From assembly GCF_006345805.1 (NCBI RefSeq), contig NC_043005.1, forward strand, positions 21,266,001 through 21,330,000: a stretch of 64,000 nt of DNA, written 5' to 3'. This DNA is from Octopus sinensis. Taxonomy: Eukaryota. This document shows positions 1,914 to 63,430 of the stretch, piece after piece; position 1 is the first letter of the stretch, and every line of letters begins with the position of its first letter. A program made the translations under genes and the position numbers. The notes under the pieces are model-generated. The model had not been told where the DNA came from, made no database searches, and saw only the letters and a list, made by a program, of their open reading frames with translations.

Positions 1914-2084
1914 CTTACACAAAAGTTGACTGTGGACCTCCAAAAGACATTGCTGTTGCAACAAAATCCTACAAAACTACTTCCTACAAATCTGAAGTGA
2001 TCTATTCTTGTCCAGGAGGACTTGAATTTAAAGCAGTATGTAATGAATACCGTAAATGGGCTCCAGCAGTGACTGCTTGTAAAG
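1914..2084 (+). CDS. Exon S1, Sushi/CCP domain
   Basis: ttccattccag|CT...AAAG|gtaatc, 171 nt. [56 protein letters not shown] has the four-Cys plus Trp CCP pattern (CxxP, YxC, C, W, C). Confidence 0.9.
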
Positions 2085-5000: not shown

Positions 5001-8000
5001 AGGGTCACTTCCTGCATGGAAAACAAATAGGAAAATGACTTCTTTTTTAACCAAGTTGTTAGCACTAATTAAAATTACACCCTCAATGGCTGGTGAAATC
5101 ATTATGTTAATGATATGTTCTAGTTGTTTAATTCAGAAGACACATCCCTATGAAGATAAAAGAGATGGATTTTAGTTCTTGCCATGAGTAGCCATATTTT
5201 TTCACATGCTTTTACATTCAGGATTCAAATCCTATCTGGGTGTACTTTATCCTTCATACTTCTGTGATTGATTAAACAACCACTATTCAGGTACTGAGGC
5301 CAATTTATTTTCACGTAACCCTGCTGCAGAATATGTAGCCTTGTGTTTACATTAGAAGCTATTATCATAAATATTGGTAACATCAACAATAATTATGATT
5401 ATTTTTGTTGTTAATGGTGATGGCTTGGGTGAATCAACAGAGAATCAGACAAAATTTGTTGTGGTATTTGTTCTAGCTCTTTAACTTCTTTGTTAAAATT
5501 TGGCTTTTGTGAACTTTGGCTTTCCAGGGACAGTAAAATAAAACACCATCAAGTGTAGAGGCCAATTTAATTGGCCACTTCTGATCTCAAAGATTTGACC
5601 TACAGTCTATGTCAGAAATTATTATTTTTAATGTTGTTATTTTTCATTGGTCTAAATTTTACTTTAATTCCAGTTGCTGAGACCCATTTTGTGAAAGTAA
5701 AACATGCAGCTCTAGATGTACCCAAGAAAACATTATGGAATAAGAAAAATGTAACAGCAGACGGTTGTGCAGAAAATTGTGTGTCTGACGAAACTTGTTT
5801 ATCATTTGAATTAATTAAAAAAAGTGGGAAATGTTTCTTATCAAAGGAAAGTGCAGCTGCCTCTAGGAAAATTAAAGTAGACAATAGCAGAGATTATTAT
5901 CAACTAATAAATCGTAATTATTCTTTGTGCTTTATTCTTGAAATTCTCTTTTCCGTTTTTTTTTTTTTTTCCTGAAATTTGTGATTTCATTTGTACTTCA
6001 TAGTATACAGATAACCATTTCTGTAAAGACATTGACAGGTTAACTTTAAGGAGAGACAAACACCTGCTCCTGAGAAAAAACTAATATTAAGTTTGTAAAT
6101 TCTGTTAGGACATTCTCATACCACATTTGTGCACTTGGAAAAATTTTTGTATTTTTATATATGGAAACTGGCTTTTCTTAAACCTGTAGTAGTAGTAGTA
6201 GTAGTAGTAACTTATATATAGCACGTTAGCATGGCTTTTTCACAGTATCTTGCCCTTTGTTGCTCTCTTCCATAATCTGGGACACAAAATAACAGAAAAA
6301 AGTAATGCTAATCTATTTAGTTGTGTATCTCTTAAATTTTGACATCGTTATTATGGCTGGATGCCCTTCTTATTCACCTATCATTGTACCATTATACCAC
6401 ATGAAGAGTATATTCTTCCATAACACTAGAATTAGAGATAATTCTCTGCTGGGATGAAAAGAAAACAGCTAGCATATTTTGATCTCAAGCTCATTTAGAG
6501 CTCAGGTTTAAACAGATATAATTGCCAAACAGTTTCAAGTATTATGAATAGACATGTCATCAACAGATTTAAGGTTAAATTATCGAGATTCTACAAGAAG
6601 TTTGATATTTATATAAGGATTATTACCAATATAACTACATTCAACTAACTGAACATTGCTTTAAGCTTTAAGTCAGGTATCACACAAAGTATACTCTCAC
6701 AAAATGCCTAATAAAGAGAACAGACACTTTCACAGGAATTTCAAAACCTATTCTCATACTATAATATGAAACTTAATAGTTGGCATTACTCAAAGAATCT
6801 CCAGTTAATGTCAAAATAAGATATTTTAAACTATCTCCCTACCCCTAAAAATAACTGTTCTTCTACCAAAATTTGAAGCAATTATCATTACTGAAGTTGT
6901 GAACATCTTTTTGAAATTCCATAAGTTTGTGTATTGTCTTTCTTTCCATTGAGTTGTATTTGTTAATTTTATTGCTTTATTTGGATGTAAGGGAAATGTT
7001 GATTCCCTTTTGTTAATTGTCCCACAAGGGTAATTTTGAAAAAGGTATATTTGAAGATGAAACAGTTGTTCACTCTCAACACCTACCACAGCATCAGAGC
7101 AGTTGTAATGACCAGTAACAGTAGCATCGGTAACAATAACAATAAGAACAGTAACAACAACAACAGTACCAACAACCATCAACAATGTGATACATCATAG
7201 AGAGTGGGATATGCAAGCTTATGTGGGTTGGGCCCTGATTAATTAATACCAGTTCAAAGTTTCTGATAGTGTTGAAAATAGTACTTGGCTGCTGTTGTCA
7301 CAACAACTGGCTTTAATCTTTTTATTTCTGTAGTTGCATCACCAACAGCAATAGTTATGGTAAATGGCCACCTGTTGGAACCACTCAGCATCATAAAGTC
7401 AGTCTGCCAAAGTTGTCCTTTCACAGCTCTTTTGTATGATCCAGAGGAGAGTGGACAGCAGACTGCTGTCAGAGGTCTCACAGGGTCTCTTTCCACACAT
7501 TATAAGCTTTGATACTTGGTTGTTAATTGTCACGGGAGACATTCAACATCCAAGTACCAAACTCAAAATCCTAGCTGTCCCCAGCAAATCAGTTTTTTGG
7601 GGCTTGCTCTGCTCTTATGTCAATTCCAGTTTCTCTGACATATTTCTTGAACTTGGTTGTTAGTGCTCTGAGTGCCTCTACAACTGTTGGAATGACAGAC
7701 AATCTCCTCATAGTCCACATTCTTGCAATTTCGTCTTTTAGTAGTCTGTACTTTTCAGGCCTTTCTAGTTATTTGTCACTTATTCAAGCATCTCCAGGTA
7801 TTGCAATATCTATGATCTTGGTCTCCTTTTTTTCCTTTACCTACTGCTACAATATATGGTCTGAGCCTTGTTTAGGGAGTCACATTGGATTGTAAAATCC
7901 CACAGTATCTTATGTTCGTTATTCTCAGTGACTCCTTCTGGTTCATGTTTATACCATTTCTGTGCTTTATTCAGACCATACTTTTCACATAGCCTCCAGT

Positions 8001-10787
8001 AGAACAAATTTGACCATGTAATCATGCCTCCTTTTGTAGTGCTTTTGGGCCAGCTTGCTACACTCACTCACAATGTGAGATTGTTTCGTTTCTGCTGCCA
8101 GGTCTTCAATTTCCCTATCTGAAAAGTGACCTTGGCACATTTATCAAGACCAAATTCCATCCCAATGTCATCACTGAATGTTTTCACAGTATGTAGTAGT
8201 CCTTCAAGCTTATTATCATCTTTGCCATAGAGTTTAAAGTCATCCATATAAAATAGATATCTTATTTTCTTGTTGCCAATTTCATATTTATATCCTGTTC
8301 TGTTAAACTCCCTTGTAGGGCTATGCAAAACATTAAAGGTGAAAGTGAGTTACCTTGGAAAATGCTGTAGTTGATATTAATATTTATTTTTTGTGGTCAT
8401 TACTCCATTAGAGTGGTATAATTTGAGGTTTGTATTCCATACTGACATGTACCTCAGGAAGTTTAAAATCACAGGAGAAATTTTGAAGATATCCAGCAAT
8501 TTCAAGATCCATGAATGCAGTATGCTCTCAAAGGCCATTTTATAATCAATCCATGTGGAACTTCGATTTCTGCATTTTTTATGACTGTTCTCAAAGATCA
8601 TGCAAGGATCACTCAAATGGTCCTTGAATAAGAATTGTTTAAGGATGTTGAATGAAATACCCATGTTTCCAGATGTGAATTATTCAAACTCCAAAGAATT
8701 CCTCTCAACACATGGCTATGATGCTCCCCCACTACTTCTGCTCATGATCAGAGATGCACATATCATCAGCCACCAAGGGGCATGCTCAACTGGTTACGGT
8801 CAAACAACTGAGAAGCAAATCTGTAGTATTGAACAGAATATTTGCTGTAGCCCATCTTTTATACCAAGACAAAACAATGTGTATGATAACACTTCCAATC
8901 AGTTAAGATCAGAAGCCATGAGAGCCACTGCCTGGTACTTCATCAGTGCATTTACTACATTATTATTATTTTTTTTTTTTGGTAGTCTTATTTTTAATAC
9001 ATCGTTTCACTGCTCTACTGAGTGCAACTCTGTGTGCCTTGAGATGGGCTGTGGTTTGTTGTGGTGTGCTTATTTTCACTGTATTGCGAATGCTATATGT
9101 AGGTTGTGTGCAGTGCCTAGTAGTGTTGTTTTCTGTATGTTATAATCATCATAAGTCCTAGTATTTTTGTTATATATTTGTCTGAATGTTTTTTAATCAT
9201 AGCTGATGCACCTATTATTACAGGGATTGTTTCTCTTTTAAGGTTCCACTTTGAGTTACCTCTACTTCTTCCAGATCTTTGTATTTTGAGAGTTTCTCCA
9301 TTTCTTTTAGAGATACATTGTCATCTGTTGGTACTGATACATCGATTAGAAGGCATATCTTTTTCTTGGTGATCTCTATATCTGGTCTATTATCCTTGAT
9401 TTCTCTATCTGTTTGTATTGGCATATCCCAGAGTCTGGTTCCTTTACCATGTTCTGAGACCTTTTCTGGGGTGTACCTATACCATCTTTTTTCTGTTGCC
9501 ATTCCATAGTGTTGGCATAGCTTCCAGTGTATATATGTCTCAACTCTGTCATGTTTGTGGATCTATTCCTTCTTAGTCAGGAGTGGGCAACCAGACACAA
9601 TATGATTTATCGTTTTTCATATCACCACATATTCTGCAGCTACTTGTATTTCTCTTCATTATGTGTTTCTGGTGATTTTTGGTGGGGAAGCTTTGATATT
9701 GTGCTGCTAATAAAAACCCTTCAATCACTGCTTTGAGTCCTGAGCTTCTCAACCATTGTTGGGATTTTGCTTTGTGTATTATTTTTTCTGTTTAGCATAT
9801 CCCTATATTTGCCATGTAAGGACTTTTCTTGCCATTATTTTATCATGATAATTTGTTGTTCAAGTTTTAGTTTGGATTTCAGTTGTTTTACAGCTTTTGT
9901 TGCTTCTTTCTCTTCATAGTTATTAGCTGCTATGACTTCTCTTTCGTATTTGTCAGCTTCCTTAAAGACAGAAAATAGTTTTTTGTTTTGCTCATGTTTT
10001 GTAACTGTTTATACCACTTTTCCTTGCTTCTGAGTTAGGTATTTCTGTAATCTTATGGTGGTTCTTTTGTAATGGTTTTCTAGATGTATAAGGCCTCCAC
10101 TACCTTTGATAAGTTGTGTATATAAACTTTCTGTGTCAGATTTTAGGTTTGGGTGGTGCATCCTAAATTGTCATTATTTTTCTTGTTTTCCTCTCTATTT
10201 TGATTAGTTCATTTAGAGTCCAGTTAAGAATATTGTAGCGATAACTTATAACTAGGATGCCTAGAGTGTTGATACTTATTACTTTGTTTTTCCCATAGAA
10301 CTCAGCTTTAATTATTAATCTCAGCTATAGTATTCCTGTCTTATTTTCTCTTTCATTCGTGTGTTGTACCATATCTAGTTCATTGATTCCTATATATCTG
10401 TATGTCTGGCTTTCGTATAATTTTCTTATTTCATTTGCTTTATCTAGTGTGATACCGTTACTCTTAACTAGTTTTCTTTTTTACAAGGTGGCTATGGCAC
10501 ATTTTCTTAGCTAAATTTTATGCTTATTTCTTTGATAAATCTATGCACTGCCTGTTGTAATGTTTCCAATTGTTTGTCATTTGCACATTAGCATGCGGGA
10601 TGAAATGTTAAGCGGTATTTTGCCCATCACTACTTTCTGGGTTCAAATTCTGCCGAAGTTGACTTTATCTCTCATCATTTCGAGGTTGATAAAATAAGTA
10701 CCAGTGAAACACTGGGATTGATATAATCGACCAAAATTTCAGTCCTTGTGCTTTTAGTAGAAAGGATTATTGTTGTTGTTGTTGTTA

Positions 10788-10838
<51 letters not shown>

Positions 10839-11095
10839 TATGTTTGACTTTTGTTTTACATTTGCACAAGCTGGCTCCAAGTCTCACCCAGAGACCTCAA
10901 GAGACAACAAGTTGGAAGTTCATGTTGGTGCTATGCCTAGGGTGCCATATATTTGGTTTTGTACTTAGTGTTGTACTAGTGAATGCCTAAAAGACCATAT
11001 GAAAATTATGTTTGTTTTAAAACTTGAGGTTACATAGAAAGTATTTTGCATAGGATATGAGCAGTTCCCATGAGTACTATCTTTTGAATTTCTGC

Positions 11096-11162
<67 letters not shown>

Positions 11163-11166
11163 TATT

Positions 11167-11208
<42 letters not shown>

Positions 11209-11415
11209 TCATCTGTGTTTATGTTCTGGGTTTAAAATCTGCCAAGGCTGTTTTTGCCTTTTATTCTTTTGGAATTGATGAAATATGTACCAGTTGAGCA
11301 CTGTCGTTGATGTAATTGACATACCTCATTTACCCAAAAAATTCAGGCTTTGTACCATAGTAGAAAGGTTTATTACTAGTTTGCTGCTACTGCTGCTGCT
11401 GCTATAAAAAATACG

Positions 11416-11471
<56 letters not shown>

Positions 11472-12334
11472 GTTTTAAGGTTAGTTAATTATGTAGATGT
11501 ACCATGTAACCCAAATATGAAATAAAATATTAGAAACCCATCTGGTTCAATATCTTTTCTACATACAATTTCTTATGTAAGCACAATTCATTCACAAAGC
11601 CATTTTTCAGCATAGTCGTTTTCAAAATTCATGTGAATTCTACTTCATCATGAAACATACTCGGAAGCTTGCCTCATTCTTTAGGTTTTCGATAAATTCT
11701 ATGTACATCCATCTTCTACTGATGTACTTTTCTTTAAAATTAAATGACCTTAAGAACACTTAACACATTGGTCAGCCATCTGTTGAACAGCACTTAGACC
11801 ATTAGAAGAGGTATGTACTCATGGATTATGTGCATCTTAAATGTTGAAACAAAGTTTCAAATGAGTCTGAAGATGTTCTACGCACACTGGAATTCTAAGT
11901 TGTCATTTTGTGGATCAATTATATGTTTATAATATATTGTCTTTTTAAAACAAATTATGCACCAGATGCTATATAATATTTAATGTGTGTTGAGTATAAA
12001 ATTTATTTCTTATTTTCTTTCTTTGTTTTTCTAGCCAAAGCTGATCTTTTTACATTTAAAAACATTATCATAATTGAGCCAGATACTTTGGAAACACAGA
12101 AAAATGTGAGCTTGCAGGAGTGTTATAAAACTTGCATTCAAAATCCATTGTGTAACTCTTTTAAGTATAATAAAGAGACAAAGATCTGTTATCATAGTAC
12201 TGACAATCACTTGACTCATGACCTTAAACCAAGCAAAGATAATTGGGATACTTACATCATTAACCCAGGTCAGTAGTGTTTTCATTTTAATTATTATGTA
12301 TGTGTATGCATCTACATGTGTGTATAATATATTT

Positions 12335-12383
<49 letters not shown>

Positions 12384-12389
12384 CACATA

Positions 12390-12428
<39 letters not shown>

Positions 12429-21400: not shown

Positions 21401-21555
21401 AGACAAACACATGCTCCTGAAGAAAAAAAGTATTAAGAATTGTAAATATTGTTAGGGCATCCTCATACCGAATTTATTCACCTTGAATAAATTTATGCAT
21501 GCTTTCAATCATATTTTCTGTGTAAGAAAGGAAACATTATTTTCTGAAACCTGAA

Positions 21556-21591
<36 letters not shown>

Positions 21592-41000: not shown

Positions 41001-41383
41001 ACACAGGGGCTCAATCAACAACATAGAAGTTAAAATCTTGTCCACACATAGAACAGATGCAACAATCAGACAAATTACGGAAGCTACACACATAATAGAA
41101 GATAAACTTAGCCTGAATAGGAAACTGGAATGGAACACTAGCACACACCACAACATATGACAGAAGAGGATCCCCATAAACTGGTTACAATATAAACAAA
41201 ACAGAAAGCATAATAAAATAAAATACACAGATGAATAAACAAATGGAAGTAAATAACTATATACATTTTTTTATTATATTTAAAAAAAATTTTATCTTTA
41301 TTTTTGTTTTTATTATTATTATTACTATCATTATTGTTATACATACATACATAATAATAATAATAATGATGATAACGATAATA

Positions 41384-41432
<49 letters not shown>

Positions 41433-43816: not shown

Positions 43817-43900
<84 letters not shown>

Positions 43901-43909
43901 ATATATATA

Positions 43910-44001
<92 letters not shown>

Positions 44002-45784: not shown

Positions 45785-45833
<49 letters not shown>

Positions 45834-51800: not shown

Positions 51801-54800
51801 ATATAACAAAAGCTGTTACTCGAAGTTTCATGTTCCCGTTCGTCGGACAGTTTTGTTAAAATAGAACCAAAATAACATTTTGATCAAAACTAGCTAAAGG
51901 ATACACCTTTAAAAATGGATTTGTTTCATTGGTCCTTTCAAATAACGGTCTTAGGCAAGCGATAAACAAAAATAAATGAGTTCGATATAAATTATAAAAA
52001 TCAAGGAAAAACCTTAAATTGAAGAGTTGATTTAAATACATATTGTCATTAATTATATAGAAAATATAATTCGAATTAATACATAAAAATTAGAATTAAA
52101 ATATATTAAAATATTTCACAACAGTATATACTCATACTAAACCATCAATATACATATATACATCAGAATACACAGATAGATGTACACAGACCACATACAT
52201 ATACAGACATATAAATGCAAAATGAAAATATACACACAAATACATGTACACATATGTATATGCAATCTTGCTCGCATGCAAAAATCACTTGGTGTATACA
52301 TATAGACTAGAAGTGAAACGCAGAGAGGGGGAAGAAAAGAAAACGATCTTATAAACAACAGAAAGCTAAAGATATGAGTAAGAGAAGAGGAGAGTTACAG
52401 GACTCTATACAAGTAACAAATAGGGAGAGAAGAAAATAACGAAAGAAAGGAAGGAAGAAATATATATATATATAGATGTATAAATATAGATGCGTATATA
52501 TATATAGATGTATACATATAGATGTGTATATATATCTAGATGTATATGTATACATGTATATGTATAGATGTATTTATATAGATATAGATATGTATACATG
52601 TATGTGTAGATGTATATATATATATATAGATATACATGTAATATGTACACATATATACATGCATACATATATACACCCATACACACATACCCCCCTACAT
52701 ACACACACACATGCACACACATACATAGGTGCAGGTGTGGCTGTGTGGTAACAAACTAGGTTCCAAAACACATAGTCCTCAGTTCAGTGATAACTTGGCA
52801 TTTGTCTTCTGCTATAGCCTCAGACCAACCAAAGCCTTGTCAGTGGATTTTGTAGACAGAAACTGAAAGAAATCACGCCACATTCTAGGGAGAAAAACTA
52901 GAAGTAGTTGATAGCTTCCGTTACCTAGGTGACCAAGTCAGTAGCGGGGGTGGGTGTGCTGAAAGTGTAACTGTTAGAGTAAGAATAGCCTCGGCAAAGT
53001 TCAGAGAGCTCTTACCTCTGCTGGTGACAAAAGGCCTCTCACTCAGAGTAAATGGCAGACTGTATGATGCATGTGTACGAACAGCCATGCTACATGGCAG
53101 TGAAATATGGGCCGTGACTACTGAGGACATGCGTAAGCTCACAAGGAATGAAGCCAGTATGCTCCGATGGATGTGTAATGTCAGTATACATACTCGACAG
53201 GAGGGAACCTGTGGAAGAGGTAGACCCAGGAAAACCTGGGACGAGGTGGTGAAGCATGACCTTTGAACATTAGGTCTCACCGAGGCAATGACTAGTGACT
53301 GAGACCTTTTGGAAATATGCTGTGCATGAGAAGACCCAGCAACACAAGTGAGAACATAACCCGTGGCCTTTTCCAAGGAATGTAGCCAGCCGACTTATGT
53401 GTACCTTTCCTTCTTTGGTCACAAAACTCTGCTTGCGAAAACCTGTTGAAGCAAGTGAATTCGAAATCGAACCAAATCCGACAACTGGCACCCATGCCAA
53501 CCTCCCTTCATTGGACACTAAACTCTGCTTGTGAAGACCTGTTGGAGCAAGTGAAATCGAAATTAAATCAAATTCGATGACTGGCACCCGTGCCAGTGGA
53601 GTGCTAACAACTCCATCCGAGCGGGACCACTGCCAGAGCAGCTGTCTGGCTTCCATGCCGGTGGGCACGTAAAAAGCACCTTTTATAGCATGATCGTTAC
53701 CAGCGTCGCCTTACTGGTACTTGTGCCGGTGGCATGTGAATGAGACATTTGAGCGAGGTCATTGCCTGTGCTGCTGGACTGACTTCTGTGCAAGTGGAAA
53801 GTAAAGAAACATCGTTTTGACTCTGTGCGTGAGGAGCGCTACTGAGTCAAGTACATCAACATCAAAGAATCAAATGGAAATTATAGCTGTGATACCTGTG
53901 CCGGTGGCATGTAAAAAGCAAGCATGATTTGAATGTGACTGATGCAAGTGCCGACTTCACTGGCTTCCGTTCCGGTGGCACGTAAAAAGCACCAACCGAT
54001 CGTGGCCGTTGCCAGCCATGTCTGGCAACTGTGCTGGTGGCACGTAAAAAGCACCCACTACACTCATGGAGTGGTTGGCGTTAGGAAGGTCATCCAGCTG
54101 TAGAAACACTACCAGATCAGAGTGGAGCCTGGTGCAGCCTCCTGGCTTCCCAGACCCCAGTTGAACCATCCAACCCATGCTAGCATGGAATACAGACATT
54201 AAACGATGAGGATGATGATGTATGTATATATGTAAGTCTATGTGTGTGTCTTTGTGTTTCACCCTCATCACTGCTTCACAACTGCTGTTCATTTATTTAC
54301 ATCCCCATAACTTACTGGTTTCTCAAGAACAAACTAATACAATAAGTACCAGGCTTATCAACATAAAAAAGCACTCGGCTGTGTCTCATATTTTTGTTTG
54401 CCCACTCAGTTGTATCTATCAATTTATCTTTGTGTGTGTGTGTATATATATATCTATATATATACAAAAAATTAGAAAAAATCACCTTCTATCAATTGAA
54501 AATGAACAATTGAATTACACCATCTAGAAAATTATATATAATAGAAATATTAAAATTAAAATAACAATGAAATACCAATGATGAAGTAAATTGCAAAAAA
54601 AAAATAATAAAAACGTATTGCAATTTACGTAATCATTGGTATTTTATTGTTATTTTAATTTCAATATTTCTATTATATGTAATTTTCTAGATGGTGTAAT
54701 TTAATTGTTCATTTTGAATTGATAAAAGGTGTTTTTTTCTAATTTTTTATATATATATATATATATTATATTGTGTGAAATTTGATTTAGTATTTCTAAA

Positions 54801-57800
54801 TTGAATTTTTTCCCTGTAAGTTTGGATTAATATTCCCTCAAATAATTATAATATATATATATAACACCCTAATGGGGGCCTTAACTCCCAAATTTTAGTC
54901 ATTTCTTTTATGATCCAAAACTACATCAAATGTACTGAATGGATCTTTATGAAATTTGGAAATTATATTCTATGCATAAGGGCCATAACCACCATGACAA
55001 TTCATATATTTTTCCTGTTGATGAAATTTTTACCATAGATATTAGACACAAATGAATATTTATACAATTTCAATTTCTTACAAATCAGAAAGACCCCTCC
55101 ATTGGGACTTAACACCCACAATGTTGTCATTTTATCTAAGCAAGGACAAATACAGTTGTGCTCTTGGAAGCTGTAGGGTTACCCGAGCATAAAAGATGAG
55201 CATTATTTCTAATTCAATGGTACAACAGTGTAACAGTTTGCTTTGACATACACTTACATTGTGATTTCTTCAATGTGGTGCATAAATTGTCAAGTAAATG
55301 AGAGGCATCTTTGCCTCCACTGATTCAGTTGCAAAGTGTTGAATAAAGTTATTTAATTGCAGACCTCCTTTCAGTCTTTTATTATCACTGGGTCACGCAT
55401 AGTCTCCAAATGGTAACATTGATTTCAAGGCCTCCCCAGATGAGTGACTGCTTATTCAAAGACATTTATAGATTGTAAATTTATTCTGTCCAGTTATGTA
55501 TCAGTATAGTAGTCATTTGCAATCTCCAGAGGTGACACTTTCATTTCTCCTTAGCCCTCACATCACACAGTTGTTAATGTTTATTTCAGTTGGGTCATGC
55601 CCTTGCAATTGCTATAGATTCGTATTGCATCTTACGGCTGTGCCTGTCACCTGCATGGTGAGGAATCCATTATTGGGAGTGGTAACGACTAGGGTAGCTG
55701 ACTGCTTATTGTGATCATTTGTCTTTTGGTTTCCAGTAGTTTTGCTCTCTTTTACAAACCCAGTGAACATATATTTCCTATTTCAAAGAAATTCAAACAA
55801 TAGATATAAGACCCAAGTTAAAAAGATTCTCAACAATTCAACTTCTCTGCTTGACATTAAGACACCCACCCCCAACAGGGGCCTTAACTCTCACATTTTA
55901 GATCTCCATGACCATTTTTCAGGAGTAAAATCCTTTTAACAGGTTCAATAAGACTGGAATTTTGGAATATGTGCATAAAAATCAGTAGTATGGGATACAT
56001 GTGGCATGATTACAATTTTTTTAGGGTGGGTAAAGAGGGAAATAACCCTCATCTGCAATTTTGATGAAATTCGAAACATAGATATTCCAGTTCATTACAG
56101 AAAATATAACAGAAAAGTCTAATTCTTCAATTGCATGTAACACGAGCAATGCTGGGTATCTCTGCTAATTTATTATAAAAACACAATCTGATCAAAAATT
56201 TTTTACGATAAGATGCCTTCCCAGAATTTATGTGAATTTTAATACATCATGAAAGATAGTCAAAACGTCATCTGAATGTTTAGGATGTAGATAATCCAAT
56301 TGTATATCACTCTTCTAATGGTTTGCTTTTGTTTAATATTAAGTAACTATAACAACACTTGACACTTGTTTAAGGGGGCATTGACCCTAAAAAATTTATA
56401 CCATTACAGAAGAGATGAACAAATGAATTAACTGCAGCCTAAATATTGAGACAAGGTTTCCAATAAGTTTGAAGAAGTTCTACTACTCACATGAATTATG
56501 ATTAGGGTATCATTTTGTTGATGAATTATTTGCTTATTATAAACTTGTAGTATCGCCCGGTGTTGCTCGGGTTTGTAAGGGAAATAACTATATCAGCATT
56601 TTTAGAGATGTAAAGTATAATAGTCATCTCAATATGGCTAACCACAAAGGGGGAGGGGGTTACTGTAGCTTGTTACGTTCTGAGATTTAATAATAAATTT
56701 TTAGAGAGTTACTTCCCTTATATATGCCGAAAATGCATTAAAAATGGGAAAACTTGATGGTAAATTTTTTTTTAAATCGTAGACTCATCGTAGACGCACG
56801 CTAATACCCAGAAGGGCTCGATATGAATCACAACTATAAGATACTCGGTTTTGGTTAAACTGCACCGCAAAGTGTGGGAGTAGTTAGGAATCTAAATCGT
56901 AGGAGACAGACAGCACACAACCTCACTTTTATATATAAAGATTATCTATTTAAAAAAAAATTATGCACCATGTGCTTTGCAATGTTTAATGTTGTATGTT
57001 TTGTGTGTGCATAAAATGTACTTCTTGTTTCCTGTTTTTACCATCCAGCCAATGAAGAGCATATTATGCTTAAAAAGGTTAGTATACCTGGGCGAGATAT
57101 TCTAGGAGTGCTTCCTAATGTGAACTTAAAGGAGTGTAATAAAGCTTGTCATCAATATCCAGGATGCAATTCTTATGCATATGATGAGAAAGAAAAGGTC
57201 TGTAGCCTGAGTGATGTTAGTCAGTTGACTGGTGTACTTAAACCCAAGAATGTAAATGCAGACATTTACATCATTAACCCAGGTCAGTAGAATATTTCCA
57301 TCTTATTTATTGTCTGCATGTCTGTGTTTGTATGTATATACACATATGAATGTAGTTTGCAATCTCTTATTTGACTCTGTATTTGACAAAGCATATTTAT
57401 ATTGAGTTCTAACACCAGATTATTAATATCACTATACCTTAGTGAAAAAGGAAAATACATACATACATATGTGTGTGTGTGTGTACATCCATATATGTAT
57501 GTATGTGTATGTATGTATGTATATATATATATATAATATAAATTAGAGAAAAACCACTATTATGCAATTCAAACAATGATAGACATAAACCAAATCATAA
57601 ATAAAAAGTAAAATGTATTTTTTAAAACATAAAACTAGATCACAAAAAGTACAAAAATGAATAAACAATATATAGTAAGTAAAAAAAACTACGTATGTTA
57701 CATGGCTATAATTTAAATTCCAATTCCAATTAAATTTAAATTTAATTGAAAAACAATTCAATTTAAAATTATAGTCACTCTCCAGGTTAACAATAATAAC

Positions 57801-58826
57801 TATAATTACTAAATAAATAAGCAAAGAGAATTAAACAATATTTCTTAAAGAAATAAAATCATGATATTTCTTATAGAAAAAACTCCATTAACTAAATTTG
57901 AAACTTAAAACATTAGGACCAGTTGCCAACAATACATTTATTATGTTAAATATTTAAGGTAAAAAAATAGAGTAAATAGATAGAAAAAGGTATTTATCTG
58001 TGAAGATATAATTTAGCTTAATAAAAAACATTAATAAACTATAGAATATCTTTAACCTATACTCTAATATTTCATTCACTGTGATCACCATGACTGACCA
58101 GGCTATCAGATGTTGCTACACATCGCTGGTCACAATGTGCTTTGCATTGTTTTAGCCTTCAAATGATGCCACCCCGCTGGCTAAGTGAGCAGGCCAACAG
58201 AAGAAAGAGTGAGAGAAAGTTGTGGCGAAAGAGTACAGCAGGGATCGCCACCACCCCATGCAGGAGCCTCATTGAGCTTTAGGTGTTTTCGCTCAATAAA
58301 CATTCACAACGCCCGGTCTGGGAATTGAAACTGCAATTCTATGACCACGAGTTCGCTGCCCTAACCACTGGGCCATTGCGCCTCCACAATATTTAATTAC
58401 TAAACTATTTTACAAATCAATCACTCTTAATATTTTTAGATTTTAATTCACATATAATAATTATAAAATAATAAATTTATATAAAAGTACGTATCTAAAT
58501 TATAATCAACAAATATAGTAATTAAAAATCCATATTTTTTCAATCAATAAACATATAAATAAATAGATAAATTACTCCATTATTACTTAAATAAATATTA
58601 TAGATATCATTCCAAAAATATTTATGAAATAAAAAAATTCCGAAGAGTAAAAACATATAATTTATCGTTTATAAAATTATTTGTGTAAAAAGTTCTTCTT
58701 CTTCTTCTTCTTCTTCTTCTTCTTCTTCTTCTTCTTCTTCTTCTTCTCCTTCTCCTTCTTCTCCTTCTCCTTCTTCTTCTTCTTCTTCTTCTTCTTCTTC
58801 TTCTTCTTCTTCTTCTTCTTCTTCTT

Positions 58827-58857
<31 letters not shown>

Positions 58858-58869
58858 TTATTATTATTA

Positions 58870-58917
<48 letters not shown>

Positions 58918-61900
58918 ATTTATTACCAATAGAAATATAATAAGAGCTTTTAGTTATACTAAAACATTTTTGCAATCTAAATCACAAAGTGACAAACTAA
59001 TATTTTACAATTTAACGTTCAGATATAATAATTAAATAAATGTATGTATCTAAATTATCGTTGACTAATAAAAAATTAGAAATTCATATTTAACAATTAA
59101 TACTTATATAGAGTACAATAATATTTCTTAAATAAAAATGTCTACTTATCTCTCCAAAAGGTGTATTATGAACTAAAACGTTTTCAAAACGAAAAACGTA
59201 TTACTTAGCATTTATAAATTTGCTCGTGAATACGTAGCTTAAAGAAATAGAACAAACAGATGGAAATATACGTTTTATCAATGAAAACTACAAATATATT
59301 TTTGATTAACAAAAAAAGAGAATAAAATCTCTAAGTGAGAATAAAATCACTAAACAGTAGGATATCAATCACTAGAAACCTAAAATTTAGAATTAACTAT
59401 GATAAAATATAAATATACTCGAATTATCATATAGTTAAATTAATTTATATAACTACAATTTACTGTATATTCTCTAATCCCCTTATACAAATTTATTTGT
59501 TTCATTCATATAAATATGGTTATGTTAGAGCCCAAATTTTTCCCTGTAAGTTTGGAGTTACACTCCCTAAAATTATTATTATTATTATATATATAAAGAA
59601 AAGGGAGGAAGTCAGAATTTTGGATAATTGTTATTTAGTGCTTCCATCTCATTTCAGAGAATCATCAGGAATAATATTTTTACAGAAAACATCATTTATG
59701 TATTTGTGCGTTAGTTGAAAAAATCTAGAACTGAATTAGAAAGAGAATGTTCTTTGCTATTTCAAGTTTATATGTGCCTGTATATGTGTGTGTAAGTATC
59801 TGTATGTGGTGAATTTTTGAAGGGAGGTAGAAAACAGGAAAGATGAAAGAATGAGGATGATTCAAAGGCAGTATTAATTTAAACCCTCAAGGAGACATAA
59901 GTAGTGCCAATAGATGACCCATGACTCTGTGTCATTCAAAAGAGTGATCAGAGTGACAGCTTTGTACACACTGATCTTAGTAACACTCTTTTATACTGTC
60001 TGCGAAATGCACTTTTTGCCTTGACCAGTCTGTTGTTAACCACCTTGTTGATTTTGTTATTTGATGAGCTCATGCACCCTAAGTAGGTGAATTGGTTAAC
60101 TGCCTTTAATTCAGTCTCACTGATGGTGATGTGAAGCGGGTATTATTCTTGCCATAGTGCACATTGATGGAAGATTGTTATTTTCATTAAACTGACTTCT
60201 AAGTCAAAATATTAAGCTGCTTTTGTAAAGCAACAGTTAATGTCTTTGCCTTCGCAACAAAAACAACAGCATCTGCAAAAAGTAATTCATGAATAGCTTT
60301 TTCTGTTGTTCTGGTGTGATTTTATAAGTGCCTTAAGTTGAAATGTCTGCCATTGGTATGGTGCTGGATGTAGTGTAGATGCCATCTTCATCATCAGCAT
60401 CATAGTCAAGAAGATAGGGAAAAGGGTTGGGATGTGGACATAGCCTTGCTTCACATCAGGGCTTGGAAAGATTGTTGCTGTGCATGGTCTGGCCCTGTCA
60501 GTTTTCATATAGCTAGATGATCATGTTGAGGGACTTGAGGGAACATCCAAAACACTTTAGGATTTGCCCTAGACTTCTTCTGCACAGTGTCAAATGCTTT
60601 GGTGAGGTCAACAAAGGTAATGTAAAGTCCTTTGTTTTTGTTCTCTGAATTTCTGTTGTCTCTTGTTTGCTCTGAAGCTGCAATGGCTTTCTGAAAGGTT
60701 TTCTTCTGCAATAGTGAGCAGTACTTTCACAAAGATTTTGCTCACAATGGAGAACAAGTGACCTAAGTCAGTAGAATATTTCCATCTTGTTGGACTTAAA
60801 GAAGTGTAATAAAGCTTGCCATCAATATCCAGGATGCAATTCTTATGCATATGATGGGAAAGAAGAGGAGTAGTTGGAGTAGTCAGACCTCCTACTCTAC
60901 ACAAAATTCATTGCTATGATCATTGCTGACTTTGACCTTACTAACAGCATGCCTGTAAATGGCTTGTACAACTTTCATCAACCACTCATCTATTCGTAGC
61001 TTCTGTATTGACTAGCATTAAAGAGAGTTGGGGATACTATATAAGGCTTTCTCCATGTCGACAAAAGTCAAGTACAATGAATCGTTTTTTGCTAAATACT
61101 TCTCTTGCAGGAAGATAGCACCGATAATGCTTCTCCCTAGCACAAAATGAAACTACATTTCGTCTAGACTAACTCCCTTCCTAAATAGTTGAGCTATGAC
61201 CCACTCTGTAACTTTCATCACATGGTCCAATAATTTGATGCCTCTGGAATTATTTCTGTCTAAATCGTGACCTTTGCCTTTGTAGCAGTTGGCTATGATA
61301 CTGCTACACCAGTCATTGGGTATTGACTCCCTTGTAGAAAATCTGATTAATTATCCAGGAGACTAGATAATATCCCACTATGCCAGGTATTTTAAGTATC
61401 TCAGCAGTGGTTTCTGATGGGTTGGTCTCCCTGTCGCCATAACCTTAATTGCTTTATCTACCAAGCTACTGTTGATTTAGATAGCTGGTCCCTCTGTTGG
61501 GTTGCATTATGCAGACTCTCCTCATATGCATTCTCTATATTTATCAGCCTTTTACAATGGCACTTCCAAGCCTTTTTCTTTGCAGAATTGCTAACTGCAA
61601 GTGACCCGTTATCCATGTAAACACACATCTTTCCTACAATATCATGATTTTCTCTGACACACTTTACTGTCTTGCAATTCGAAACACATCAAACTTCTGA
61701 TCCTCACACTAAATTTCTTTCTTTCTGCTTCTCCTTTTGCTAAATATACCTGTCTCTTAGCTTTTCTTCTAGCTACTTGATATAGTTTTCTTCTCCCCCC
61801 ACTTTTCCAGTCCTACCAAGCCTCTCTATTTACTCTAATGGCCCTGTCTACAACATTGTTCTATCACCCTGTCACCTTTGTGGGACTTTGTGCTATCCGC

Positions 61901-63430
61901 AAATATGGTCAGTGTTCCTCATTAAGTTGGCCCATAGCATCTTCCAGTTGTCCTTGATATTATATGTCACTATCACATCCTCCTTCTTGTCAAATGCTCC
62001 AATCTGAATCTAAATTTCTGACTATTCAGAGAATCAGTAAGCTTCCAGATCTTTCTTTTCCAGATTGGTTTGCTTCTTGGCATCTTTCTAGCTTGAAGTT
62101 TGAAGTCACTAATGACTAACCTATGTTAAGATGTGCACTCTTCATCTCAAAAAATCTTTGCATTTATAAGCAATCATCTTTCCTACTTTGTGAGGAAAAT
62201 ACAGTCAATCTGGTTTTTATGGCCCCGAAATTGATAGGTGAACAGGTAACTGACTGGTTTCCTGAAATTGGTGTTGCAGATCATAATGACATTTGCGTCA
62301 GCGAACCCTAGTAGTCTACTTCCCTCTTCATTGCATCTTATCAACCCATTTCTCAGCAAGAAGTATGCCCACACCACCAACCCCATCATTACTGCCTAAC
62401 CAGAGGACTTTTTTATCTGTATTCTTTGCCTGTGAGGAACCTGGCAAAAGCTTTGCTCCACCTTATCTCTTGAATGTAACACACATTTACACACCTTCAT
62501 TCTAGCATCTCAACAATTTATATGCCTTATACATACATACATGATGGTTGCAAACTCATGTTCGAGTATTGCCATCACCTGATTGAAGTCCCACACATGC
62601 GAAGTCTACAACTAGCTATTTTTGTGATTGGTCTCTCATTTCTTTCAAGTGATGCCTGTGCATGAGGATTTTTTTATAATGGAGAAAGGATTTGCACAAA
62701 ATCAATCCCACTCTCTGAACATGGACAACAAAAACTTGAAAAGAAGAACTAGTCTACATCATCGAATATTGTCAGTGTCACAGGTTTTCTCTCAGTTTCC
62801 ATCTACTAGAGAGATGTTATGACAATAGAGGGGCCGCCCACTCCTAGTGGGCCAACCACTCACTAACTCAGATATTTCCAAATCCCCATGCATACATACA
62901 TGCATACATGCATACATACACATATACACATGTTGTTGGATGGCCACACCCGCCTCACCAAGCAAGCTAACAACCCAACCATGCTACAGGTTGTTCTGGG
63001 TTACATGTTACCAGTAGCTCCTAAGTATGACCTTACATACATACATACACACACACACACATACATACATACATTCATTCATTCATTCATTCATTCATTC
63101 ATTCATTCATTCATTCATCTATTTATTTATCTGTGTGCATATTACTTCAATTTGTTTCACTTAATACTTTTCATTGTAACATTGTCATTTTCTCATCATT
63201 TTGACCCTCTTTCTAACATGAATCATCCCATTGATATCAATTTGTTTTCTTAACTTCAGTTTACACAAAAGTTAACTGTGGGCCTCCAATTGATGTTATT
63301 GGAGCATCAAAGTCCTACAAAACCACCACCTATAAATCTGAAGTGATCTACTCTTGCCCAATGGCAGAAAAACTAAAGTCAATATGTGACAAGGACAACA
63401 AATGGAGTCCAGTAGCACCTGTTTGTAAAG
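1914..63430 (+). CDS. Partial multi-exon gene encoding a tandem [Sushi-PAN-PAN]n extracellular protein (13 exons in the window, open at both ends)
   Basis: join(1914..2084,5674..5913,12035..12268,16739..16909,21050..21286,29513..29743,31583..31753,33666..33905,40005..40238,44390..44560,50400..50639,57049..57282,63260..63430). All introns are GT-AG and all junctions are phase 1. Junction codons are V, P or D, with no stops. Total 2745 nt. No start, signal-peptide or terminal exon was recognised. Confidence 0.88.
2825..3010 (+). mobile_element. Interspersed SINE-like repeat; a second copy lies on the - strand at about 8690..8955
   Basis: The block ttgagcatgtccctcagtggctgacaatatgtgcatctctgattatgagcaaaagtagtggg..agcatcatagccatgtg recurs as its reverse complement at 8706-8790. 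Confidence 0.55.
5674..5913 (+). CDS. Exon A1, PAN/apple-like domain (type A)
   Basis: ttaattccag|TT...AATC|gtaatt, 240 nt. [79 protein letters not shown] has the CxxxC-x5-CxSF-xn-CxL four-Cys PAN motif. Confidence 0.9.
7500..8690 (-). mobile_element. R4/Dong-like (R2 group) non-LTR retrotransposon remnant
   Basis: RT motifs FYMDDFKLY and [16 protein letters not shown], then [25 protein letters not shown] leading into the restriction-like endonuclease. Frames are broken. Confidence 0.8.
9130..10570 (-). mobile_element. R4/Dong-like LINE remnant
   Basis: [47 protein letters not shown] matches the RLE PD..D motif. Confidence 0.75.
10575..10775 (+). mobile_element. tRNA-derived SINE with (ATT)n tail
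   Basis: B-box-like gggttcaaattc, body gaggttgataaaataagtaccagt, tail tagtagaaaggattatt. Same family as the 25105-26132 cluster. Confidence 0.7.
10839..11096 (-). mobile_element. Short 3' stub of an R4/Dong-like LINE embedded in a (TAA)n array
   Basis: The - strand reads [18 protein letters not shown] followed by a 3' UTR. (AAT)n flanks both sides (about 10790-10838 and 11097-11207). Confidence 0.7.
11415..11470. repeat. (ACT)n microsatellite
   Basis: Direct inspection. Confidence 0.9.
12035..12268 (+). CDS. Exon B1, PAN domain (type B)
   Basis: ttgtttttctag|CC...CCAG|gtcagt, 234 nt. [77 protein letters not shown]. Confidence 0.9.
12336..12426. repeat. (TA)n microsatellite
   Basis: Direct inspection. 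Confidence 0.9.
13330..13790 (+). mobile_element. RTE LINE 3' fragment
   Basis: [21 protein letters not shown].. and [11 protein letters not shown] are homologous to 52880-53330. Confidence 0.7.
14430..16130 (+). mobile_element. Penelope-like element, degraded reverse transcriptase
   Basis: Motifs [20 protein letters not shown] and [14 protein letters not shown]. Multiple frameshifts. Confidence 0.75.
16230..16536 (+). mobile_element. RTE-tail-related repeat with an internal 63-bp tandem duplication
   Basis: catcatt/gtttaacgtccgctttccatgctagcatggg.. recurs at 19460-19640(-), 29845-30060(+) and 53950-54220(-). The 63-bp unit starts at 16397, 16460 and (partially) 16523. Confidence 0.7.
16739..16909 (+). 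CDS. Exon S2, Sushi/CCP domain
   Basis: acttccag|TT...AAAG|gtaatg, 171 nt. [56 protein letters not shown]. Confidence 0.9.
20170..20845 (+). mobile_element. CR1/L2-like LINE 3' end
   Basis: [11 protein letters not shown].. / RGHIYKVRK / [12 protein letters not shown] pattern, followed by an (att)n tail at 20826-20845. It is absent from the paralogous introns before A1 and A4. Confidence 0.7.
21050..21286 (+). CDS. Exon A2, PAN domain (type A)
   Basis: ttaattccag|TT...AAAC|gtaatt, 237 nt (one codon shorter than A1, A3 and A4). [78 protein letters not shown]. Confidence 0.9.
21800..23040 (+). mobile_element. CRE-like non-LTR retrotransposon remnant
   Basis: [18 protein letters not shown]..; [40 protein letters not shown] (zinc knuckle plus RLE). 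Confidence 0.6.
23900..24850 (-). mobile_element. Possible Ty3/Gypsy integrase relic
   Basis: Fragmentary - strand peptides ..SSIDQGLQF.. and ELLGI..HHQP resemble the integrase core. Heavily degraded. Confidence 0.35.
25105..26132 (+). mobile_element. Cluster of five head-to-tail tRNA-derived SINEs
   Basis: Heads (g)gtgagctggcagaattgttagc at about 25105, 25325, 25524, 25688 and 25931. B-box gagttcaaattc. Most copies end in (att)n. Confidence 0.8.
26860..28330 (+). mobile_element. Probable LINE ORF1 (gag-like) relic
   Basis: Interrupted ORFs with an Asn-rich tract and a degenerate zinc knuckle [15 protein letters not shown], followed by a Pro/Thr-rich tail. Confidence 0.4.
28520..28930 (-). 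mobile_element. R4/Dong-like LINE fragment, same subfamily as 45835-47650
   Basis: [48 protein letters not shown] closely matches 46950-47260. Confidence 0.85.
29513..29743 (+). CDS. Exon C1, PAN domain (type C)
   Basis: tttttttttgcag|CT...CCAG|gtcagt, 231 nt. [76 protein letters not shown]. Confidence 0.9.
31583..31753 (+). CDS. Exon S3, Sushi/CCP domain
   Basis: tcacttctag|TT...AAAG|gtaaaa, 171 nt. [56 protein letters not shown]. Confidence 0.9.
32200..33060 (+). mobile_element. Mariner transposase remnant
   Basis: [21 protein letters not shown] (HTH) and [19 protein letters not shown] (YSPDLAP motif). Confidence 0.85.
33666..33905 (+). CDS. Exon A3, PAN domain (type A)
   Basis: ttaattccag|TT...AAAC|gtaatt, 240 nt. 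[79 protein letters not shown]. Confidence 0.9.
35390..38015 (-). mobile_element. R4/Dong-like LINE remnant
   Basis: [49 protein letters not shown]. (AAT)n lies immediately 5' on its strand (38019-38071). Confidence 0.75.
38990..39850 (-). mobile_element. R4/Dong-like LINE 3' remnant
   Basis: [42 protein letters not shown]. Confidence 0.8.
40005..40238 (+). CDS. Exon B2, PAN domain (type B)
   Basis: ttctttctttctag|CT...CCAG|gtcagt, 234 nt. [77 protein letters not shown]. Confidence 0.9.
40440..41760 (+). mobile_element. Penelope-like element 3' part (GIY-YIG C-terminal region)
   Basis: [27 protein letters not shown]...SLNRK.EW resembles the Penelope endonuclease C-terminus. Confidence 0.55.
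41349..41447. repeat. (AAT)n microsatellite
   Basis: Direct inspection. Confidence 0.9.
41857..42643 (+). mobile_element. Non-autonomous Helitron-like element (787 bp)
   Basis: A|TCTATATATATAAAA 5' end, subterminal hairpin cgtgtgcatagaacgcacg, CTAG|T 3' end, no target-site duplication. Confidence 0.75.
43817..44000. repeat. (CTAT)n microsatellite
   Basis: Direct inspection. Confidence 0.95.
44390..44560 (+). CDS. Exon S4, Sushi/CCP domain
   Basis: caattctag|TT...GATG|gtaacg, 171 nt. [57 protein letters not shown] second in-frame AG lies 6 nt downstream. Confidence 0.88.
45185..45600 (+). mobile_element. R4/Dong-like LINE 3' fragment
   Basis: WDFPIQ..RPDLVVV..; [35 protein letters not shown]. 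Directly preceded by (AAT)n. Confidence 0.8.
45835..47650 (+). mobile_element. R4/Dong-like LINE, 5'-truncated ORF (RT, zinc knuckle, RLE) with in-frame stops
   Basis: [55 protein letters not shown]. 46206-47630 stays in one frame with a few stops. (AAT)n lies at 45785-45830. Confidence 0.9.
47860..48300 (+). mobile_element. Mariner 3' fragment
   Basis: [32 protein letters not shown]. Confidence 0.8.
48666..48788 (+). pseudogene. Ectopic 123-bp copy of the internal part of exon A4
   Basis: Matches 50497..50619 with one mismatch near the left end. It lacks both exon ends and the donor site. Confidence 0.9.
50400..50639 (+). CDS. Exon A4, PAN domain (type A)
   Basis: ttttgaatctag|AT...AACC|gtaaat, 240 nt. 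[79 protein letters not shown]. Confidence 0.88.
52728..53330 (+). mobile_element. tRNA-derived SINE head followed by an RTE LINE 3' fragment
   Basis: ggtgcaggtgtggctgtgtgg A-box-like head; [49 protein letters not shown]. Confidence 0.75.
54466..54748. repeat. Foldback/MITE-like inverted repeat in (TA)n
   Basis: Arms 54466..54596 and 54618..54748 (131 bp each, about 90% complementary by eye) with a 21-nt spacer. Confidence 0.85.
56544..56941 (-). mobile_element. Non-autonomous Helitron-like element (398 bp)
   Basis: On the - strand: A|TCTTTATATATAAAA start, hairpin cccgagcaacaccggg, end CAAG (a CTAG variant) followed by T. Confidence 0.75.
57049..57282 (+). CDS. Exon C2, PAN domain (type C)
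   Basis: ttttaccatccag|CC...CCAG|gtcagt, 234 nt. [77 protein letters not shown]. Confidence 0.9.
58075..58386 (-). mobile_element. tRNA-derived SINE
   Basis: The - strand head ggaggcgcaaTGGCCCAGTGGttagggc..GTTTCAATTCC carries A and B boxes, followed by a non-tRNA body. Confidence 0.75.
58694..58915. repeat. Compound (CTT)n/(ATT)n microsatellite
   Basis: Direct inspection. Confidence 0.95.
59950..62300 (-). mobile_element. Degraded RTE-type LINE fragments
   Basis: [25 protein letters not shown] and [27 protein letters not shown] (RT and AP-endonuclease pieces). Confidence 0.6.
60767..60864 (+). pseudogene. Ectopic rearranged fragment of a type-C PAN exon
   Basis: 60767..60788 equals 57283..57304 (the donor-side intron start of C2). 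60791..60864 matches 57121..57194 with 4 mismatches in 74 nt. Confidence 0.85.
63260..63430 (+). CDS. Exon S5, Sushi/CCP domain
   Basis: ttaacttcag|TT...AAAG|gtaatg, 171 nt. [56 protein letters not shown]. Confidence 0.9.

Follow-up and report, generated by a model that had tools for sequence, protein, structure and literature searches.

A 1.6-Mb array of Sushi and PAN exons in Octopus sinensis that may form one giant gene for an extracellular protein

A stretch of 64,000 nt of the Octopus sinensis genome (C9:21,266,001-21,330,000, hereafter the window) carries a series of small exons on one strand, each encoding a single Sushi or PAN domain, and it raises the question of what gene, or genes, these exons belong to. 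An earlier note on the window described them as 13 exons of a tandem protein of about 915 amino acids, open at both ends. They are indeed an open slice, and the size was understated: by searching the whole 2.72-Gb assembly (13,516 contigs) we found that the window exons are about 4% of a much longer array, which comprises at least 298 exons, extends over 1.61 Mb and ends in a GON domain. The array lies on a single strand, consists of phase-1 symmetric exons with intact frames and cysteines, and is conserved in three Octopus species. It probably represents a single giant gene, or a small number of very large genes, whose product would be a glycosylated extracellular filament with many binding sites; we put the probability of this at about 0.55. 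That the array is a single transcript, that its product is secreted and what class of ligand it binds, we infer.

The 13 modules were recovered from a listing of stop-to-stop open reading frames combined with a splice-site scan. They occupy positions 1914 to 63430 of the window in the order S-A-B-S-A-C-S-A-B-S-A-C-S, where S stands for Sushi/CCP, A for a basic type of PAN, and B and C for two subtypes of a B-type PAN. All of them are preceded by a pyrimidine tract with an AG acceptor and followed by a GT donor. Their lengths are multiples of three (171/240/234/171/237/231/171/240/234/171/240/234/171 nt in order), the flanking introns are in phase 1 on both sides, and each exon encodes exactly four Cys without a stop. 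They are as follows:

1914-2084, + strand: exon S1, Sushi/CCP, 171 nt, phase 1-1
5674-5913, + strand: exon A1, basic A-type PAN, 240 nt
12035-12268, + strand: exon B1, B-type PAN of subtype B, 234 nt, donor GTCAGTAG
16739-16909, + strand: exon S2, Sushi, junctions in agreement with NCBI model P0002
21050-21286, + strand: exon A2, A-type PAN, 237 nt
29513-29743, + strand: exon C1, B-type PAN of subtype C, 231 nt
31583-31753, + strand: exon S3, Sushi, 171 nt
33666-33905, + strand: exon A3, A-type PAN, 240 nt
40005-40238, + strand: exon B2, B-type PAN of subtype B, 234 nt
44390-44560, + strand: exon S4, Sushi, 171 nt, acceptor moved from 44396 to 44390
50400-50639, + strand: exon A4, A-type PAN, 240 nt
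57049-57282, + strand: exon C2, B-type PAN of subtype C, 234 nt
63260-63430, + strand: exon S5, Sushi, the first of a doubled Sushi, the next S exon lying 7.7 kb further on, beyond the window

The introns between them measure 1.8-8.2 kb, and the spliced product is 914 amino acids long with 52 Cys and no stops, in line with the uninterrupted frame and complete set of cysteines claimed earlier. Every exon stood where the earlier note had placed it, and the sole change was the acceptor of S4. The corrected acceptor is also used by P0002 (O. sinensis LOC118764741), which matched our exons residue for residue across the B1/S2/A2/C1/S3 and A3/B2/S4/A4 junctions. The alternation of subtypes B and C was likewise borne out: B1 and B2 are 51% identical, B1 shares 41-42% with C1 and C2, and among 18 B-type exons those an even number of steps apart share about 46-48% and those an odd number apart about 40%.

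To what extent does the series continue outside the window? A 14-mer pattern that joins the end of the B/C exons (AYCCAG) to the donor GTCAGTAG gave 47 matches genome-wide, 38 of them on the plus strand of C9 at 20.446-22.012 Mb, against five for the control. A 24-mer pattern of the B-exon end, with up to three mismatches allowed, gave 67 matches, all on C9(+) at 20.446-22.035 Mb and none on the reverse strand. Matches of an S-exon pattern, an A-exon pattern and two protein searches filled the same interval. After merging of the coordinate lists, the array comprised at least 298 exons (104 S, 100 A and 94 B) at C9:20,439,845-22,050,053, on the same strand and with a median spacing of 4.6 kb, the window exons being items 129-141. 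If all of them were spliced together, the product would have at least about 21,500 amino acids. A contiguous 264 kb of the array was read base by base and the other ~1.3 Mb was placed by pattern and protein coordinates; the exons of this remainder are known by position and, for the most part, by open-frame status, the 140 exons scored in a protein search being open across the exon proper.

In the 200 kb directly downstream of the window, hidden Markov models (HMMs) built from the window exons revealed an uninterrupted array of S-A-B units with a doubled Sushi every 13 exons. The similarity of S exons peaks at a lag of five and that of B exons at a lag of two, as expected if 13 exons make up a higher-order block, S+4x(S-A-B), in which the B subtypes alternate. 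Thus, of the earlier description as a Sushi-PAN-PAN triplet with one domain per exon, the iteration and the symmetric single-domain exons hold, and the fixed triplet has to be replaced by a unit in which S-S-A-B recurs every 13 exons; strict module order is not kept beyond the window. Near the 3' end, at C9:22034711-22035325, an A exon and the following B exon are only about 170 bp apart and share a single open frame of 275 amino acids, so the intron here is either very short and in frame or lost.

The downstream end of the array is well defined. Four GON exons (C9:22,057,216-22,070,111) follow directly after the last B exon (22,050,053), and after GON the frame ends with a stop. The domain corresponds to Pfam PF08685 (E=3.4e-12 for the exon at C9:22057216-22057488, E=6.3e-33 for the O. 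bimaculoides model P0004, E=2.1e-32 for the Sepia model P0016), and the GON set of the array shares 87% identity with the C-terminal end of O. bimaculoides LOC106869402. The array can be taken to end here because GON is followed in O. bimaculoides, at a distance of 6 kb, by an unrelated CACHD1-like gene. Only two GON-domain loci were found in the genome. The second (C9:20,357,078-20,361,277, 60% identical to that of the array) belongs to a small upstream paralogue at C9:20347159-20361277, a divergent gene on the same strand about 80 kb before the array, which has A/B PAN exons (20347159, 20351137) followed by its own GON. A search with the GON region for a complete model of a paralogue returned only P0004 itself and a gastropod EGF-GON protein.

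At the upstream end, the array opens with an A exon at 20,439,845. The 38 kb that precede it yielded no repeat exon and hold only debris of long interspersed nuclear elements (LINEs) and transposases, and an ab initio search upstream of the array for a first exon with a signal peptide gave only low-complexity artefacts. We also considered Argonauta P0017, in which a signal peptide is followed by A-B-A-B, as the missing N-terminus; its orthologue is a separate small gene on C13, and this candidate was rejected. The C13 gene, with four PAN modules (A-B-A-B), is the orthologue of Argonauta hians GAB1601772, which has a signal peptide. It is present at 18845360-18852165 and 19126682-19133475 (minus strand) in two copies with identical scores, 281 kb apart, the result either of a segmental duplication or of duplication in the assembly.

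The identity of the modules was established by profile and by predicted fold. In the window product Pfam recognized PAN_1 (PF00024; E=3.4e-65, eight stretches) and Sushi (PF00084; E=5.9e-11, four stretches, counted as 4-5 domains). The PAN_1 score was 216 bits against a cut-off of 21.4 (for a 912-amino-acid version of the product), and single A, B and C exons scored 36.8-43.5 bits. For Sushi the whole product scored 43 bits against a cut-off of 20.7, and a lone S exon, with 19.6 bits, fell just below it; all 22 S exons compared have four Cys and a K-W motif. Four Cys are invariant in 17/17 aligned A and 18/18 aligned B exons, and exactly four are present in each of the 36 PAN exons of the 264 kb. 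AlphaFold2 modelled a B-S-A-B stretch with a mean pLDDT of 78 (about 85-93 for PAN); in the Sushi segment beta-strands were predicted with a pLDDT of only 49-70. By Foldseek the PAN fold matched the PAp domain of plasminogen (root mean square deviation 1.9 A over 78 residues) and the N-domain of HGF (template-modelling (TM) score 0.69-0.71), the top multi-domain matches being factor XI and prekallikrein (E=3e-6). By sequence, the closest solved structures to the B-type module are MIC4 and SML-2 (4a5v, E=4.6e-10; 2yil, E=1.6e-4), and the A-type module has weak matches to MIC4 and the HGF N-domain. The earlier assignment to four-Cys PAN of the plasminogen/HGF N type is upheld by the cysteine count: with four rather than six Cys per module, these domains belong to the HGF/plasminogen N-domain type and not to the factor XI apple subtype.

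The chemistry of the modules differs between classes. The window product contains 13.9% Lys and has an isoelectric point of about 9; the mean net charge is +6.8 for A modules and about 0 for B. N-X-S/T sequons stand at fixed positions, on average 1.4 per B exon and 0.6 per A exon. Ser, Thr and Pro account for 7.4%, 7.2% and 4.0%, there are no tracts rich in these three residues, and every exon is a folded Cys module; together with the lack of VWD and SEA domains in the Pfam scan of the window product, this does not correspond to a gel-forming or tethered mucin. No gene model contains a ZP domain of the kind found, often beside PAN modules, in apical matrix proteins (Dumpy, NompA, LET-653), no transmembrane segment was seen in any of them, and beyond PAN, Sushi and GON only spurious faint matches to MBD and COLFI were obtained. 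From the domain types, the invariant cysteines and the N-glycosylation sequons we infer an extracellular or secreted protein.

All 58 full-length exons in the 264 kb are intact, with in-frame length, four Cys, no stop and canonical splice sites. The mean amino acid identity between paralogues is 56% for S, 58% for A and 44% for B. In a simulation of substitution-only decay at 14-22% divergence from the consensus, a copy remained stop-free with four Cys only 1-3% of the time, and the chance of the observed integrity under neutral substitution was about 1e-84 for 50 exons. Judged from these sequences, the exon copies are old and have been kept intact. At the same time, the median ratio of nonsynonymous to synonymous substitutions (dN/dS, NG86) between paralogues is high: 0.68 for S, 0.96 for A and 0.66 for B. 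Three orthologous exons of the 3' end gave a concatenated dN/dS of 0.76 between O. bimaculoides and O. sinensis, their nucleotide identity (92-94%) being not above that of the flanking introns (96-98%). Between O. sinensis and O. vulgaris substitutions amount to 0.53% in exons and 0.58% in introns, with four amino acid-changing codons and three synonymous ones, too few to inform. Accordingly, the frame, the cysteines and a few scaffold residues are held by selection, and surface residues change freely.

Conservation between paralogues is not confined to the exons. The 40 nt of intron beside each exon are conserved at 66-77%, equal to the exons themselves, and identity falls towards the background (about 54%) a few hundred bases out. 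Class-specific motifs were revealed in these flanks within C9:21266001-21530000, for example TCTAAATTTTACTTTAATTCCAG upstream of A exons and, downstream of B and S exons, GTCAGTAGAGTGTTTCC and GTAATGTAAATA, respectively. They persist in paralogues whose proteins share only about 50% identity and may serve as splicing signals for very long introns. In addition, exon A2 is 94% identical in amino acids to an A exon 80 kb downstream (C9:21367485-21367724), as compared with the family mean of 58%. The tract of high identity consists essentially of the exon and about 300 bp of the downstream intron (80% overall), a pattern suggestive of gene conversion from one higher-order block to another.

The open reading frame listing and a Pfam scan of the long frames revealed no further gene in the window introns. 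Pfam gave only a weak RVT_1 match (8068-8349), which points to retroelement debris; such debris was seen, e.g., at 8068-8349(-), 28588-29004(-), 46554-47630(+) and 52889-53266(+), and related C-terminal LINE-like frames are present at both 28588-29004 and 46554-47297. Microsatellite and low-complexity tracts lie at about 10700-11300, 12280-12530, 41140-41700, 43760-44050 and 58660-59040. They include (ATT/ATA)n, (TA/TG)n, a tetranucleotide array that translates as LSIY repeats and a purine-rich (GAA/AAG)n tract of about 300 bp, and are responsible for strong local AT and GC skews. Two introns also contain fragments of neighbouring exons, both recent partial duplications without usable splice sites:

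48666-48788, + strand: pseudo-exon fragment in the S4-A4 intron, 123 bp, a copy of the 3' half of A4 at 99% identity, no acceptor
60791-60868, + strand: pseudo-exon fragment in the C2-S5 intron, 78 bp, a copy of an internal part of C2 at 94% identity, no splice sites

The second of them is preceded by a copy of the motif GTCAGTAGAATATTT, which occurs in the intron downstream of B exons.

The same array was found in two other species of the genus. O. vulgaris is colinear with positions 1-38,859 of the window at 98.9% identity, and its array is tiled by abutting gene models of 2247, 4470 (spanning 416 kb), 861, 857 and 3597 amino acids and more. In O. bimaculoides the array lies at CM046610.1:88.25-88.82 Mb, with models of 1133, 709, ..., 1865, 761, 4083, ..., 1067 amino acids plus GON and additional unannotated exons upstream of them. 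At a density of one exon per 1.5-2 kb it holds about 290 exons in about 0.56 Mb, that is, about as many as in O. sinensis in one third of the space. Its introns are of about 1-2.5 kb, as compared with a median spacing of 4.6 kb in O. sinensis, which makes the array about three times more compact. This implies a massive repeat-driven expansion of introns in the O. sinensis/O. vulgaris lineage or a loss in the other. In O. sinensis itself models of 380, 667 and 2643 amino acids are annotated. The models lie head-to-tail with gaps of 0.5-4.5 kb, the long ones (2643, 3597, 4083 and 4470 amino acids) join dozens of array exons in series, and NCBI labels the fragments as 'uncharacterized' or 'SVEP1-like'.

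Outside these species, similarity drops sharply. In a search of 1.84 billion representative proteins members of the octopus family scored 400-2650 bits, and all others at most 195, mostly over the Sushi segment only. The earlier suggestion of a lineage-specific, probably cephalopod, protein is supported in so far as this is an octopus gene. Within cephalopods, a model from the cuttlefish Sepia pharaonis ends with PAN-Sushi-Sushi-GON, Argonauta proteins have an A-type/B-type PAN pair behind a signal peptide (one of them fused to zonadhesin-like modules), and genomic contigs of a further octopod contain family exons with the same acceptor context. The statement that no characterised protein has a long iterated Sushi-PAN-PAN structure also stood up to our searches of the literature and protein databases, where no such protein, and no paper naming the array loci or the architecture, was found; the claim of novelty has to be narrowed in that the locus is already in NCBI as fragmentary models. 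It should be mentioned that the 'svep1' of the octopus brain atlas and the 'SVEP1' of skin mucus, which we considered as possible array products, are other genes. It appears that an iterated Sushi-PAN-PAN protein of about 100 units capped by GON is undescribed, its domains and giant modular extracellular proteins as such being already known.

Taken together, these data can be read as follows. The 13 window exons would be an internal slice of one very large transcription unit, or at most of a few, at C9:20.44-22.07 Mb. Full splicing would yield an N-glycosylated extracellular protein, rich in Lys and stabilized by disulfides, with a length of at least about 21,500 amino acids. It would be composed of about 100 units [Sushi - basic A-type PAN - neutral B-type PAN], partly arranged in 13-exon blocks, with GON at the end. 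Such a protein might act in matrix, in mucus or in the coat of an egg or of the body as an extended filament with many binding sites. Glycans or polyanions would be the ligands of its PAN modules, the Sushi modules would space these apart or bind proteins, and GON may serve export or anchoring. The module surfaces would evolve fast on a constant scaffold, and a recognition role (immune, gamete or matrix) would fit the high dN/dS. As all exons are symmetric, any of them could be skipped in frame, so that a defective copy could be tolerated and isoform diversity would be possible.

Several observations weigh against this reading. First, no first exon or signal peptide was identified in the 38 kb upstream of the first repeat exon. 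Second, internal promoters, terminal exons or other genes may be present in the ~1.3 Mb part, because it was mapped by coordinates only. Third, a protein query spanning the junctions returned gene models only and no transcript, contig of the expressed sequence tag type or peptide; short Logan open frames, considered as RNA evidence, proved to come from genomic contigs of another octopod, each with a single exon and flanking intron; and the accessible part of the skin-mucus proteome tables contained no identifiers or signature peptides of the family. Fourth, the terminal A exon (C9:22040302-22040540) lacks one base pair of a short A/G run as compared with O. bimaculoides (AAAAGGGAAAA to AAAAGGAAAA), and its frame is thereby shifted. 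This is the only broken exon among the 61 repeat exons read in the O. sinensis genome, and it could be an assembly error or a real defect tolerable by exon skipping. Fifth, the high dN/dS could in part reflect relaxed constraint, or dS lowered by gene conversion, which may act among the paralogues, rather than adaptive change. Finally, the proposed type of ligand derives from a comparison with distant relatives (E about 1e-10 to 1e-3). Model P0008, in which four consecutive exons are joined (B-S-A-B), was also considered as proof of splicing; it is an O. bimaculoides prediction and not a transcript, since the 'MetaClust' entries proved to be UniParc copies of gene models.

The most serious alternative is a tandem family of separately transcribed genes, roughly as annotated, with products of 380 to 4470 amino acids. 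It is possible, and we consider it doubtful. In its favour, three independent annotations each break the array up into numerous models, a single gene would require a primary transcript (about 1.6 Mb) and an mRNA (more than 60 kb) of extreme length, and most of the array was placed by coordinates rather than base by base. On the other hand, every model starts at an ATG within a B, A or S repeat exon, and several run on into an intron at their end, which argues for fragmentation by gene predictors and not for real gene boundaries. None has a signal peptide or a plausible first exon. Moreover, the boundaries fall inside ordinary introns (e.g., the 857-amino-acid model of O. vulgaris ends after A2, and the next starts inside C1) and differ between species, there is a single GON terminus for the whole array, and no exon of terminal type was found in the 264 kb.

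A bolder form of the single-gene reading seems to us rather unlikely. In this form the whole array of at least 298 exons and 1.6 Mb would be one gene, its product of at least about 21,500 amino acids would rank with the largest proteins known from animals and would probably exceed any described in a mollusc, and combinatorial use of its cassettes would give isoforms, specific to an individual or a tissue, of a rapidly evolving filament for recognition or adhesion, e.g., in an egg coat or in recognition of gametes or microbes. Less probable still is a pure library of exons, in which transcripts take subsets of about 300 symmetric cassettes, Dscam-like in spirit, to produce many isoforms of a recognition molecule (self/non-self, gamete, microbe). 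Because every exon is of phase 1-1 and divisible by three, any subset would be in frame, and the frameshifted exon could be left out; the 40-nt flanks are conserved like exons, as expected for regulated splice signals, and dN/dS of 0.66-0.96 is combined with a fixed Cys scaffold. Yet symmetric phase-1 exons are normal for extracellular modules and do not imply alternative use, the conservation of flanks may reflect constraint on splice sites and branch points or co-duplication, and no complementary elements of docking/selector type were identified. Lastly, a non-functional relic or assembly artefact, i.e., a decaying array or collapsed or expanded repeats, would agree with the fact that the searches turned up no sign of expression, with exons that show no stronger conservation than introns when O. 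sinensis is compared with O. vulgaris, and with one frameshifted exon and two exon fragments, but it is very improbable in view of the 58 intact exons out of 58 at 14-22% divergence from the consensus, the same colinear array in three independent assemblies, and a paralogue identity of only 44-58%, which marks the repeats as old and distinct and not as mis-assembled copies.

If the array is indeed a single gene, its size ranks with titin, Dumpy and the largest mucins. It has been hidden behind a dozen fragmentary models, 'uncharacterized' or mislabelled as 'SVEP1-like', in three octopus annotations, and analyses of gene counts, orthology and expression in octopus genomes will mishandle the locus until it is re-annotated. 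The array also shows how far module duplication exon by exon can go, with about 300 symmetric exons long kept intact and a threefold variation of intron content between congeners. It is a candidate for a cephalopod-specific extracellular system of matrix, mucus, egg coat or recognition, and the combination of a fixed cysteine scaffold with high dN/dS resembles that of known reproductive and immune recognition proteins.

Comparison with known systems helps to place this protein. The apicomplexan apple/PAN adhesins (Toxoplasma MIC4, Sarcocystis SML-2 and Eimeria MIC5) are likewise built of tandem PAN modules and match by sequence and fold. According to the PDB titles they are lectins with galactose-type ligands; their specificity cannot be transferred to the octopus modules because identity is only about 15-30%, and, unlike the array, they have 2-11 modules without Sushi or GON and are invasion proteins of parasites. 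The HGF N-domain and the PAp domain of plasminogen share with the octopus modules the fold and the four-Cys pattern (for the HGF N-domain a TM score of 0.7 and about 25% identity), and the octopus A modules are basic like the heparin-binding HGF N-domain. In HGF and plasminogen, however, a single N-terminal PAN precedes kringles and a protease, whereas in the octopus PAN is iterated about 200 times. Factor XI and prekallikrein have four PAN-type modules in tandem and a protease domain that is absent from the octopus models; in their apple domains a third disulfide joins the N- and C-termini, giving six Cys per module.

The Sushi arrays of SVEP1 and complement receptors resemble the octopus array in having many Sushi/CCP modules in large extracellular proteins, and the next-best matches after the octopus family are indeed generic Sushi proteins, e.g., amphioxus CR1. 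No VWA, EGF, HYR or pentraxin domain was found in any array model, and the name 'SVEP1-like' is a misnomer, since these SVEP1 domains are lacking and the matches outside the family, over the Sushi segment only, do not exceed 195 bits as against 400-2650 within it. With ADAMTS9, ADAMTS20 and GON-1 the array shares the C-terminal GON. Reprolysin metalloprotease, disintegrin and TSP1 were not found in at least 10 models examined, all of which lack the true 5' end, so that a catalytic part at the N-terminus is conceivable; since GON also caps a gastropod EGF-repeat protein, it is best regarded as a shuffled terminal module and not as evidence of an ADAMTS.

Two further systems are analogous in organization. 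Sea-urchin EBR1 (TSP1/CUB/hyalin) and abalone VERL (ZP-N) are sperm receptors of the egg surface that consist of tandem repeats and undergo rapid lineage-specific evolution. Long arrays of iterated extracellular modules and rapid evolution are common to them and to the octopus array, and this analogy lies behind the suggestion of gamete recognition; they differ in being far smaller and in having other domains. Drosophila Dumpy is a giant protein of the apical extracellular matrix, of about 23,000 amino acids, with hundreds of EGF/DPY modules and with ZP and a membrane anchor at its end. It is not related to the octopus protein in sequence, and EGF/DPY stand in place of Sushi/PAN, and ZP with the anchor in place of GON. 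The plan is nevertheless alike: in Dumpy, and probably in the octopus, a huge gene specifies hundreds of small disulfide-bonded modules in regular alternation, which presumably form a long filament.

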